Below, one piece after another: positions 42,601 to 45,600 of a stretch of 64,000 bases of DNA. Positions within the stretch are counted from its first letter, which is position 1; each line of letters begins with the position of its first letter. A model generated the notes under the pieces. It did no database searches. It was given only the letters and a program-made list of their open reading frames with translations, and was not told the DNA's origin. The translations under genes and the position numbers were made by a program. The stretch is from Macrostomum lignano (Eukaryota): contig NIVC01000225.1 of assembly GCA_002269645.1 (NCBI GenBank), positions 1 through 64,000 on the forward strand, given 5' to 3'.

Positions 42601-45600
42601 GTGTCCTCTGAGGCACATCAGGCATTGCAGTGTCCTCTGAGGCACATCAGGCATTGCAGAGTCCTCTGAGGCACATCAGGCATTGCAGTGTCCTCTGAGG
42701 CACATCAGGCATTGCAGAGTCCTCTGAGGCACATCAGGCATTGCAGTGTCCTCTGAGGCACATCAGGCATTGCAGAGTCCTCTGAGGCACATCAGGCATT
42801 GCAGTGTCCTCTGAGGCACATCAGGCATTGCAGAGTCCTCTGAGGCACATCAGGCATTGCAGTGTCCTCTGAGGCACATCAGGCATAGCAGTGTCCTCTG
42901 AGGCACATCAGGCATTGCAGTGTCCTCTGAGGCACATCAGGCATTGCAGAGTCCTCTGAGGCACATCAGGCATTGCAGTGTCCTCTGAGGCACATCAGGC
43001 ATTGCAGAGTCCCGTCATTCGCCCCGATTTCCACAGATGAGCCGCAGCGAGCGCTTCTCCGACGTATTTCGCTACAGGGTGCAAAATCTGGTCTCCGTGC
43101 TGGCCTCGCACATTCACTCCGCCTGCCGTCTGGACACCCGCGGCCTCTCCGACTCGCTGGACTCTCGGCCAGCTGGCCGGGCCAATCAGGCCCTAGCGGT
43201 GTTCCTGCGCCGCCTGCTCTCTATGATGGACCGCGGCTTCGCCTTCCAGCTGGTCAACCAGTACTGCTCTACTGTCAGGTATATGCGCTAGTACCTTGTT
43301 TGTTTAGCAGGATAGCTACCAATACCCCTTTGGTAGCCCTTTCATGTGACACCGCTACCTGCCCTTTGGGTCTTTTGATGGAGCACTTTATAGATGGATA
43401 AATAGATAGATAGATAGATAGATAGATAGATAGATAGATAGATAGATAGATAGATAGATAGTTAGATAGATAGTTAGATAGATAGATAGATAGATAGATA
43501 GATAGATAGATAGATAGATAGACAGCAGTTAGATAGATACATACATAGATAGATAGATAGATAGATAGATAGATAGATAGATAGCTAAGTAGATAGATAG
43601 ATAGATATGCAAAAGGCAGTTTCAAACTGCAAACCACACACACGCGGAAATATTCAAGAACGTTAGTTTTCGAATATTCAGAAACCGATATTTCGGCCAG
43701 AAACTGGCCTTCGTCAGGGTTTATATTTGAGGTATAAAAACGATTATTTTGGCTAGTAGATAGATAGATAGATCGATAGATAGATAGAATGATAGATAGA
43801 TAGATAGATAGATAGATAGATAGATAGATAGATAGATAGATAGATAGATAGATAGATAGATAGATAGATAGATAGATAGATAGATAGATAGATAGATAGA
43901 TAGATAGATAGATAGATAGATAGATAGATAGATAGATAGATAGATAGATAGATAGATAGATAGCTAGATAGATAGATAGATAGATAGATAGATAGATAGA
44001 GACTCGTAGATAGATAGATAGATAGATAGATAGATAGATAGATAGATAGATAGATAGATAGATAGATAGAATAAAAAGCACTCAGCTCCCTCATCATTAC
44101 CCGCCCCACCCTCCCCCACTCAGATACGGTCAGCTGCGCATTCATTTCCTTGACGTGCTCTGCCAGCACGAGCACTACGTGCCGCTCAACCTGCCGCTTG
44201 TCAAGCACCGCCTGCTAAAAGGTTGGTGGCAGATTATTTACCAATTTCATTATTTCAAAGCTTCTAGCGTACTAGCTTAGCTAGCTGCGCTACTAACAGT
44301 AGCGAAATTTGCGTTTCTTGTTGCTACTTGTTGCTGTTGTTAGCGCCGCTGCTGCTACCCAGCCGTACAGCGGAGCATTTTAAACCAGCCTTCATCTCTT
44401 AGCAGCTCTGCGATTCTCCCAAATATTGATTTCAGGCGGGGATGCCGCGAAATCGGATGTAAAGCCGCGCCAGTCAGGTAAAGCATAAGCTAATATGCTT
44501 TTGTAATAACATTTATTATTCCTCTAATCCTGCTGCCGACTAACACGCTGCTCTGGCTGTATACACAAATTAATTACTAATTGGCTTTTGTAAAGGGCGA
44601 ATTGAATTAGGGTTTACTGATTCTAATTTTCTGCTTTGATCGAGTTTTAATGCTTATTTAACATCAACCCTGTGATTCCCGTATCCGTTGCTCGATTGCA
44701 GTTAACATCTTGCTTGAATTTCCATTCAATTAACACTAGATGCAGCAGGAAAATGTCCTCTCTGTGTTGGCTTTGGTTGCTAAATCTTTGTTGGAACTGC
44801 CATGTATGTGTTGGAAATGCCATATCTGCATTGGAAATGCCATGTATGTGTTGGAAATGCCATATCTGTGTTGGAACTGCCATATTTGTGTTGAACTGCC
44901 ATGTATGTGTTGGAACTGCCATATCTGTTGAACTGCCATGTATGTGTTGGAAATGCCATATCTGTGTTGGAACTGCCATATCTGTGTTGAACTGCCATGT
45001 ATGTGTTGGAAATGCCATATCTGCGTTGGAAATGCCATATCTGATTGGAAATGCCATATCTGTGTTGAAAATGCCATATCTGTGTTGGAAATGCCATATC
45101 TGATTGGAAATGCCATATCTGATTGGAAATGCCATATCTGATTGGAAATGCCATATCTGATTGGAAATGCCATATCTGATTGGAAATGCCATATCTGATT
45201 GGAAATGCCATATCTGATTGGAAATGCCATATCTGATTGGAAATGCCATATCTGATTGGAAATGCCATATCTGATTGGAAATGCCATATCTGTGTTGGAA
45301 ATGCCATATCTGTGTTGGAAATATTATGCTTGAGCCAGCAGTCCATGCATTCCGCTAATGAAACTCACAATCGACGCACCCGAACTCGAACGCTGCTCAA
45401 ATTGGCCTGCAGCTGCAGCCAACTCGAACGCTGCAGCGGCCGGCAGTCGGAGAACCCCAGCAGTGAAGTTCGAGCGGGCCTGGCCGATGCGAGGTAGCCG
45501 CCGCTGCTGCGCTCGGCAGTGCGTGGGGTGCGGTCTCCGCTTTTCTGTCTGCACGCGCCGGTGGGGGCCCCGCCTCTGCTGCATGCCGTGTTTTCTTGCC

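Follow-up and report, generated by a model that had tools for sequence, protein, structure and literature searches.

A minimal hammerhead motif of the Penelope-like element type within a (GATA)n microsatellite of a DOCK intron in the flatworm Macrostomum lignano

We analysed a stretch of 64,000 nucleotides from the free-living flatworm Macrostomum lignano (assembly Mlig_3_7, GCA_002269645.1, contig NIVC01000225.1, positions 1 to 64,000 of the forward strand; hereafter the window), in which an intron of a DOCK6/7/8-like gene carries a long (GATA)n microsatellite split by a unique island of about 150 bp. On the strand opposite to the gene, the island bears a 41-nt type I hammerhead ribozyme motif, and its assignment to the hammerheads of Penelope-like elements (PLEs) and retrozymes is well supported by the features of its sequence. 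Minimal hammerheads of this class sit in the terminal repeats of PLEs (pLTRs) and in their non-autonomous derivatives, the non-LTR (long terminal repeat) retrozymes. We consider it probable that the motif is a genuine minimal hammerhead of the PLE/non-LTR-retrozyme kind, and that the island is most likely a single copy of such an element, solitary and heavily truncated at its 5' end.

Features of the hammerhead motif

On the minus strand, positions 43722-43682 read AAACC-CUGACGA-A-GGCCAG(UUU)CUGGCC-GAAA-UAUC^GGUUU (the caret marks the predicted cut), with an intact catalytic core and two perfect helices, as the original prediction, made from the letters of the sequence, had described it. The span then given, 43723-43681, contained the motif plus one extra unpaired base at each end, and it is shortened here because the helices end at 43722 and 43682 (Table 1). 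The cleavage site then placed between 43687 and 43686 is also the one that hammerhead numbering predicts.

Cervera & de la Peña 2014 (PMC4209133) described the minimal hammerhead ribozymes (min-HHRs) of metazoan PLEs as having a helix I of 4-5 bp, a helix II of 6-8 bp with a conserved G10.1-C11.1 pair, a single nucleotide between A9 and 10.1, and a palindromic 15.2-16.2 without a loop 3; helix III forms only between two copies. All the sequence features of this class are present in the window motif: the core (CUGANGA ... GAAA, A15.1-U16.1, and an H17 that is not G) reads CUGACGA ... GAAA-UA-U-C, the open helix I of 4-5 bp is AAACC/GGUUU, the 6-8 bp helix II with its G10.1-C11.1 pair is GGCCAG/CUGGCC, the single unpaired nucleotide between A9 and 10.1 is the A at 43710, and a palindromic AUAU stands straight before C17, where no helix III hairpin is found. 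The earlier reading of the motif as a type I minimal hammerhead of the PLE/retrozyme kind is thereby borne out. The extra A and the tiny palindromic stem III, on the other hand, had been taken for deviations, whereas both are defining traits of the class (PMC4209133). That the ribozyme would act as a dimer, as had also been proposed, is implied by its architecture, namely the palindromic AUAU and the missing loop 3.

The consensus of Poseidon_Ac, a PLE of Anolis, has the same layout as the window motif when it is read across the tandem junction (CUGAGGA-U-helix II-GAAACGUC). Metazoan PLE min-HHRs, e.g., those of Cercyon of Schistosoma mansoni and of Poseidon_Ac, share with the window motif the type I topology, the core, the helices, the unpaired nucleotide and the palindromic 15.2-16.2, and like it they occur as isolated motifs away from open reading frames (ORFs). 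However, helix III is ACGU or AUGU in Poseidon_Ac and in the metagenome relatives described below, whereas the AUAU of the window motif consists of A-U pairs throughout. The window motif further differs from the PLE min-HHRs in that it has no PLE ORF or second pLTR nearby, in that it is embedded in a tetranucleotide microsatellite, and in that its host, M. lignano, is a species without described PLEs or hammerheads. With Rfam Hammerhead_1 (RF00163) and the other curated families it has the catalytic core and the arrangement of helices I and II in common.

Rarity and folding of the motif

Both strands of the window were scanned with a descriptor consisting of a helix I of at least 4 bp, CUGANGA, 0-1 inserted nucleotides, a helix II of at least 3 bp, GAAA, 0-12 nt, U, a nucleotide other than G, and the helix I partner. 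The motif was the only match. When the window was simulated 300 times with a first-order Markov model, relaxed matches arose at a rate of 0.003 per 64 kb and none was of the motif's quality; likewise, 1 Gb of random sequence yielded 41 relaxed matches, not one of which (0 of 41) combined a helix I of at least 5 bp with a helix II of at least 6 bp.

The minimum-energy structure of the isolated 41-mer corresponds exactly to helices I and II (-13.6 kcal/mol). The whole island is more structured than shuffled sequence (z = -3.1), and in its fold helix II is retained and helix I is in competition with a local GAAAU/GUUUC hairpin. A stretch of 10 nt that lies downstream of the ribozyme (43644-43653) is 90% complementary to GCCGAAAUAU (43688-43697, comprising the 3' end of helix II and the GAAA core), and in a monomeric transcript this alternative pairing would make the catalytic core inaccessible.

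Relatives in metagenomes

Metagenome contigs of the Joint Genome Institute (JGI) were scanned with the pattern CTGANGAAGGCCAGN{2,6}CTGGCCGAAA, which was derived from the window motif. The scan revealed 19 eukaryotic-looking contigs of about four families that have the same helix II and the bulged A. All 19 continue with GAAA-(C/U)G-U-(C/U/A) and then with a helix I sequence that pairs with the upstream flank; this GAAA-YG-U-H continuation, in which H is never G, and the helix I partner both lie outside the search pattern.

We aligned 16 sequences, i.e. the window motif and 15 others including Poseidon_Ac. An unpaired nucleotide, either A or U, follows A9 in every one of the 15 comparison sequences. 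The proposed structure pairs 85% of the cells of the alignment, compared with 14-43% after a shift of the 3' partners by 1-3 columns; in helix I, changes on both sides are seen in six of seven pairs, and positions 15.2/16.2 are complementary in all 16 sequences (ACGU, AUGU or AUAU). A covariance model built from the 15 other minimal hammerheads, with the window motif excluded, recovered the motif with 35.4 bits (E = 2.7e-7), a score that, like the identity of helix II, is partly circular because the training set had been retrieved with a motif-derived pattern. The same model gave no further match in the window or in the homeologous locus of ~21 kb described below.

Contig L003 contains, ~270 bp upstream of its hammerhead and on the same strand, a frameshifted remnant of a PLE GIY-YIG endonuclease that includes the PLE-typical VYQIPCSCG (tblastn with Poseidon_Ac, E = 3e-8), and a weak GIY-YIG match like that of L003 was obtained by tblastn in contig L020. 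The largest metagenome family (L006, L008, L010-L013 and L015-L020) comprises units of ~100 bp, each with flanking sequence of its own. Read by eye, the flanks show apparent target-site duplications, namely ATATCCACCATC in L012 and AGTACCT in L011/L017, suggesting that short solitary hammerhead units are a normal product of the PLE machinery. Most min-HHR copies reported from metazoans are likewise single motifs, 'probably related to truncated PLEs' (PMC4209133). The similarity between the island and the metagenome units is confined to the hammerhead part, and none was found beyond the ribozyme.

Some further observations concern the metagenome contigs themselves. The units of the largest family occur in two 5' forms, one of which begins ~9 nt before CUGA, and in general appearance the ~100-bp units resemble tails of truncated PLEs or of the short interspersed nuclear element (SINE) kind. 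In contig L019 (~2770-2844), two copies of one hammerhead are arranged head to head, and the reverse complement of GCCCTGAAGAAGGCCAG is located just upstream of the forward copy; inverted head-to-head hammerhead pairs have been described for PLEs (PMC4209133).

The island and its proposed insertion

Tandem Repeats Finder (TRF) identified an (ATAG)n array on the plus strand at 43390-44070, interrupted by ~150 bp of unique sequence at 43608-43756. The length of the island is 146-151 bp, depending on whether TAGTA is counted as a degenerate repeat unit. The two arms of the (GATA)n tract differ in repeat phase (0 vs 3), and the tract accounts for 0.83% of the window (~1.3% for both tetranucleotide tracts together).

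The geometry of the island can be compared with that of Poseidon_Ac, whose endonuclease nicks DNA with a preference for AT-rich sequence. Reverse transcription of Poseidon_Ac starts internally, at a stem-loop 111-118 nt into the ORF and ~85-92 nt past the hammerhead cut site; its hammerhead is dispensable for insertion in vitro, and cleavage by this hammerhead needs the Poseidon_Ac protein. The 3' junction of the island is situated 79 nt past the predicted cut site and is preceded by a perfect 7-bp hairpin (43616-43630), which lies 8 nt from the junction and 57-71 nt downstream of the cut, and the (GATA)n target is 75% A+T. Because of this resemblance we read the island as a solitary truncated PLE or PLE-derived unit in a pre-existing microsatellite, and by analogy with Poseidon_Ac the hairpin is a candidate start site of reverse transcription.

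We infer the following history for this locus. The microsatellite would have existed before the insertion, and the RNA of an element might have been copied into DNA at a nick within this AT-rich (GATA)n stretch of the DOCK intron. Reverse transcription may have begun near the hairpin, just inside the 3' end of the island, from where synthesis would have run back through the ribozyme to end 34 nt beyond it. In the parent element, tandem or partner copies would pair through the AUAU/ACGU tetranucleotide, helix III would form and the transcript would be cut. The AUAU of a lone copy cannot close on itself, so that helix III is not built without a partner; the lone antisense copy therefore probably has no catalytic activity and does not affect the DOCK gene. 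Cleavage in vitro by the published PLE minimal hammerheads is weak (PMC4209133).

A number of observations weigh against the interpretation of the island as a truncated PLE-type unit. No second copy of the island was found in the window by blastn, and neither the descriptor nor the covariance model detected a second ribozyme there. A tblastn search of the window with the Poseidon_Ac protein found no PLE ORF (nothing below E = 0.14, and the weak matches were inside tubulin genes). An autonomous PLE has a telomerase-like reverse transcriptase plus GIY-YIG ORF and pLTRs, and the window holds no such element, so that the island is at most a fragment of one. No target-site duplication is readable at the island, where the repeat would mask any that exists. 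The original prediction had proposed a search with Rfam hammerhead covariance models; no family matched, neither at the gathering threshold with cmscan over the window nor at E <= 10 over 43300-44100 (801 bases). Rfam hammerhead models expect a helix III hairpin, and the result is probably explained by the lack of such a hairpin in the motif. No curated model thus backs the hammerhead call, and to this has to be added the partial circularity of our own model noted above. Finally, a literature search found no paper that ties Macrostomum to hammerheads or Penelope elements, and the insertion history is drawn from one locus.

On the minus strand, the microsatellite and the island together form an open frame of 268 codons (43275-44081). 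Since (TATC)n translates as (YLSI)n, the island falls within an open minus-strand frame, and this is a mechanical ORF that does not point to a gene. Exact look-ups of the 268-aa and the 142-aa minus-strand ORFs returned no match. The island frame was also tried as a real protein and rejected: its 51-aa peptide, compared with 1.84 billion representatives, had only a spurious match to a repetitive protein of 1,591 aa that is unlike the island. A tRNA-derived SINE head was looked for, and no tRNA was detected.

Alternative explanations

The island might also be the solo monomer of a tandem non-LTR retrozyme, that is, a unit of ~150 nt that circulated as circular RNA and was reverse-transcribed from the circle, which we regard as possible, albeit doubtful. 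Animal retrozyme units measure ~170-400 nt, and the size of the island is just under this range. Analogous repeats have been reported in platyhelminths, solo monomers are common (their proportion in a family ranges from 0 to 1), and retrozymes have been argued to descend from the pLTRs of PLEs. The animal non-LTR retrozymes (Cervera & de la Peña 2020, PMC7229834; Li et al. 2026, preprint 10.64898/2026.07.22.740005) resemble the island in being small non-coding units whose hammerhead is of type I and has a short palindromic helix III, and likewise in their low GC content, in the occurrence of solo monomers and in their presumed origin from PLE pLTRs. Retrozymes are, however, defined by tandem repeats and circular RNAs, whereas the island is one copy known from DNA sequence alone: blastn and the covariance model revealed no tandem copy of it in the window, where island and ribozyme are both single-copy and the head-to-tail series of hammerhead units that characterizes non-LTR retrozymes is not found. 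Moreover, the boundaries of the island do not match the cleavage site. The hammerheads of classical retrozymes have loop-loop tertiary contacts and a real, though short, helix III with a loop, unlike the window motif, which has no loop 3. A retrozyme monomer would overlap heavily with a truncated PLE-type unit and differ from it only in the immediate parent.

A second alternative, put forward in the original prediction, is a dedicated family of small, microsatellite-associated hammerhead retroelements, in which either an endonuclease homes to (GATA)n or a (UCUA)n end of the RNA anneals or serves for tailing. It could account for the fact that the only hammerhead in 64 kb is located in a (GATA)n tract of less than one hundredth of the window. 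A microsatellite bias of PLEs is established for other types of repeat (PMC8557442), and EN-minus (endonuclease-minus) PLEs use the hammerhead and short stretches of repeat to attach to telomeric repeats. In their analysis, Craig et al. 2021 (PMC8557442) found that insertions are biased to (TA)n for Naiad and to (CA)n and (C)n for Chlamys, and they proposed a linker-mediated microsatellite bias for Neptune. The insertions of Naiad, Chlamys and Neptune are similar to the island in that PLE-related sequence is surrounded by a simple repeat that masks the target-site duplication, but the known biases of Naiad and Chlamys concern mono- and dinucleotide repeats, and these elements mostly lack canonical hammerheads, whereas the island lies in the tetranucleotide (GATA)n. 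On the other hand, the association is a single observation chosen after the fact, and landing in some repeat is not a rare event where repeats account for 15% of the genome and roughly a quarter of the window. Within the displayed flanks of 45-70 nt, no microsatellite adjoins any of the 19 related metagenome units, and TRF, run on L012 alone, found no array near the hammerhead unit. In Poseidon_Ac, moreover, reverse transcription has an internal start that involves no homology to the target, and a literature search found no paper that connects PLEs with (GATA)n. We therefore consider such a dedicated family unlikely, and the bolder proposal that M. lignano harbours an undescribed lineage of ~150-bp hammerhead retroelements, mobilised by PLEs and homing specifically to (GATA)n/(TATC)n, appears distinctly unlikely.

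It is improbable, in turn, that the (GATA)n arms grew only later, when short seeds bordering an older unique segment or element were extended by slippage, in which case the microsatellite would not have been the target. Such growth could explain why the arms differ in purity as well as in repeat phase, and introns of M. lignano readily gain large tandem arrays whose copy numbers vary between homeologs. However, the same tetranucleotide would then have had to expand twice, independently, to the left and to the right of the 150 bp, and it is simpler to assume that an insertion split one tract that was already there. A chance match to the hammerhead consensus, or a host-selected intronic ribozyme that regulates DOCK, would fit the single copy and the missing Rfam match, but we dismiss both as highly improbable, because random sequence of 1 Gb contained nothing of the motif's quality, four class-specific features beyond the core consensus are all present, the monomer is unable to form helix III, and a motif that is antisense to DOCK cannot cut the DOCK pre-mRNA.

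Host gene and genomic surroundings

The exons that flank the intron, when spliced, align across the junction to residues 996-1067 of human DOCK6 (E = 1.8e-7, PDB sequence set). DOCK-C2 and DHR-2 domains are encoded on the plus strand, the public gene call is a DOCK gene, and a protein search with the translations of the DOCK exons showed that two M. lignano DOCK fragments in UniRef match exons of the window, whereas other searches with such translations gave no match; a Pfam search with the two flanking exons gave no match. The gene is on the plus and the ribozyme on the minus strand, which confirms the earlier placement of the hammerhead antisense in a DOCK intron.

Contig NIVC01003856.1 (20015-41379) of the same assembly is collinear with positions 21004-43213 of the window at ~90-99% identity (96-98% outside the tandem arrays and ~90-94% within them); the compared stretch ends ~65 bp before the end of the exon and ~400 bp before the island. 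The gene order is as in the window (an Exo_endo_phos gene, tubulins and DOCK), and one alpha-tubulin is identical. The intronic minisatellites differ in copy number between the two contigs and are shorter in NIVC01003856.1, where the DOCK model has 2088 aa compared with 1673 aa in the window. This contig is a homeolog or a duplicated block of the neopolyploid genome.

Just upstream of the DOCK gene are three intronless alpha-tubulin paralogs at 25161-26525 (-), 27323-28690 (+) and 31224-32588 (-), with ~81-85% DNA identity. The public gene call fuses the two minus-strand copies into a spliced model of 454 aa (L001 7839-15266), which looks like a mis-annotation. Nearly all DOCK introns contain either a large high-identity minisatellite, with a period of 16-49 bp and as many as 66 copies, or a microsatellite, (TGTC)82 being an example. 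Roughly one quarter of the window consists of tandem arrays when the TRF spans are summed approximately, and simple and tandem repeats account for 15% of the M. lignano genome.

Table 1. Positions of the hammerhead motif, the island, the host intron and the tandem arrays in the window.
Feature	Position	Strand	Remarks
Minimal type I hammerhead motif, 41 nt	43682-43722	-	Sequence, descriptor scan, fold, covariance model
Helix I, 5' strand AAACC	43722-43718	-	
CUGACGA box	43717-43711	-	
Unpaired A between A9 and G10.1	43710	-	Sequence
Helix II, GGCCAG/UUU/CUGGCC	43709-43695	-	6 bp, UUU loop
GAAA	43694-43691	-	
AUAU (A15.1-U15.2-A16.2-U16.1)	43688-43691	-	Self-complementary, replaces helix III; would pair only with a second copy
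U15.2	43690	-	
A16.2	43689	-	
U16.1	43688	-	
C17	43687	-	
Predicted self-cleavage site	43686-43687	-	3' of C17, 5' of G1.1 (43686); from hammerhead numbering
Helix I, 3' strand GGUUU	43686-43682	-	5 Watson-Crick pairs with AAACC
Second, imperfect hairpin (AAUAUUC...GAAUAUU)	43649-43678	-	Directly downstream of the ribozyme; inverted repeat I1, 13 nt, 85% complementary; in the minimum-energy fold
Hairpin GCAGUUU-G-AAACUGC	43616-43630	-	Perfect 7-nt inverted repeat; in the minimum-energy fold of the island
Unique island, ~150 bp	43608-43756	-	Putative solitary 5'-truncated PLE/retrozyme unit; 34 nt upstream and 74 nt downstream of the ribozyme
Left (GATA)n arm	43397-43607		~50 units, several interruptions; 3' of the element in its own orientation
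Right (GATA)n arm	43759-44068		~72 units including a perfect run of 43 units; 5' of the element
Host intron, DOCK6/7/8-like gene	43279-44123	+	GT...AG, 845 bp; 81% microsatellite plus island
Tandem array	37588-39112		
Tandem array	39548-40200		
Tandem array	40549-40866		
Tandem array	41663-43012		
Tandem array	44784-45322		
Tandem array	45815-46548		
Tandem array	48262-50081		
Tandem array	57137-57797		
Tandem array	60944-61541		
Tandem array	62274-63441		

Significance

As it stands, the island is an ordinary transposon relic, and no effect on DOCK is expected. It nevertheless records a minimal hammerhead of the PLE type in a free-living flatworm model for which the searchable literature holds neither PLEs nor hammerheads. 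It also illustrates that curated RNA libraries miss this class: Rfam contained no match, yet a simple descriptor and a purpose-built covariance model recovered the motif cleanly. If the family prefers (GATA)n, it would provide a tractable case of target choice by the PLE machinery and could be among the causes of microsatellite interruption in a genome so rich in simple and tandem repeats. Homing to (GATA)n/(TATC)n, if true, would extend the microsatellite bias of PLEs beyond mono- and dinucleotide repeats, and it would tie a ribozyme-bearing 3' module to the recognition of a repeat target, as in the telomere-attaching elements Athena and Coprina.

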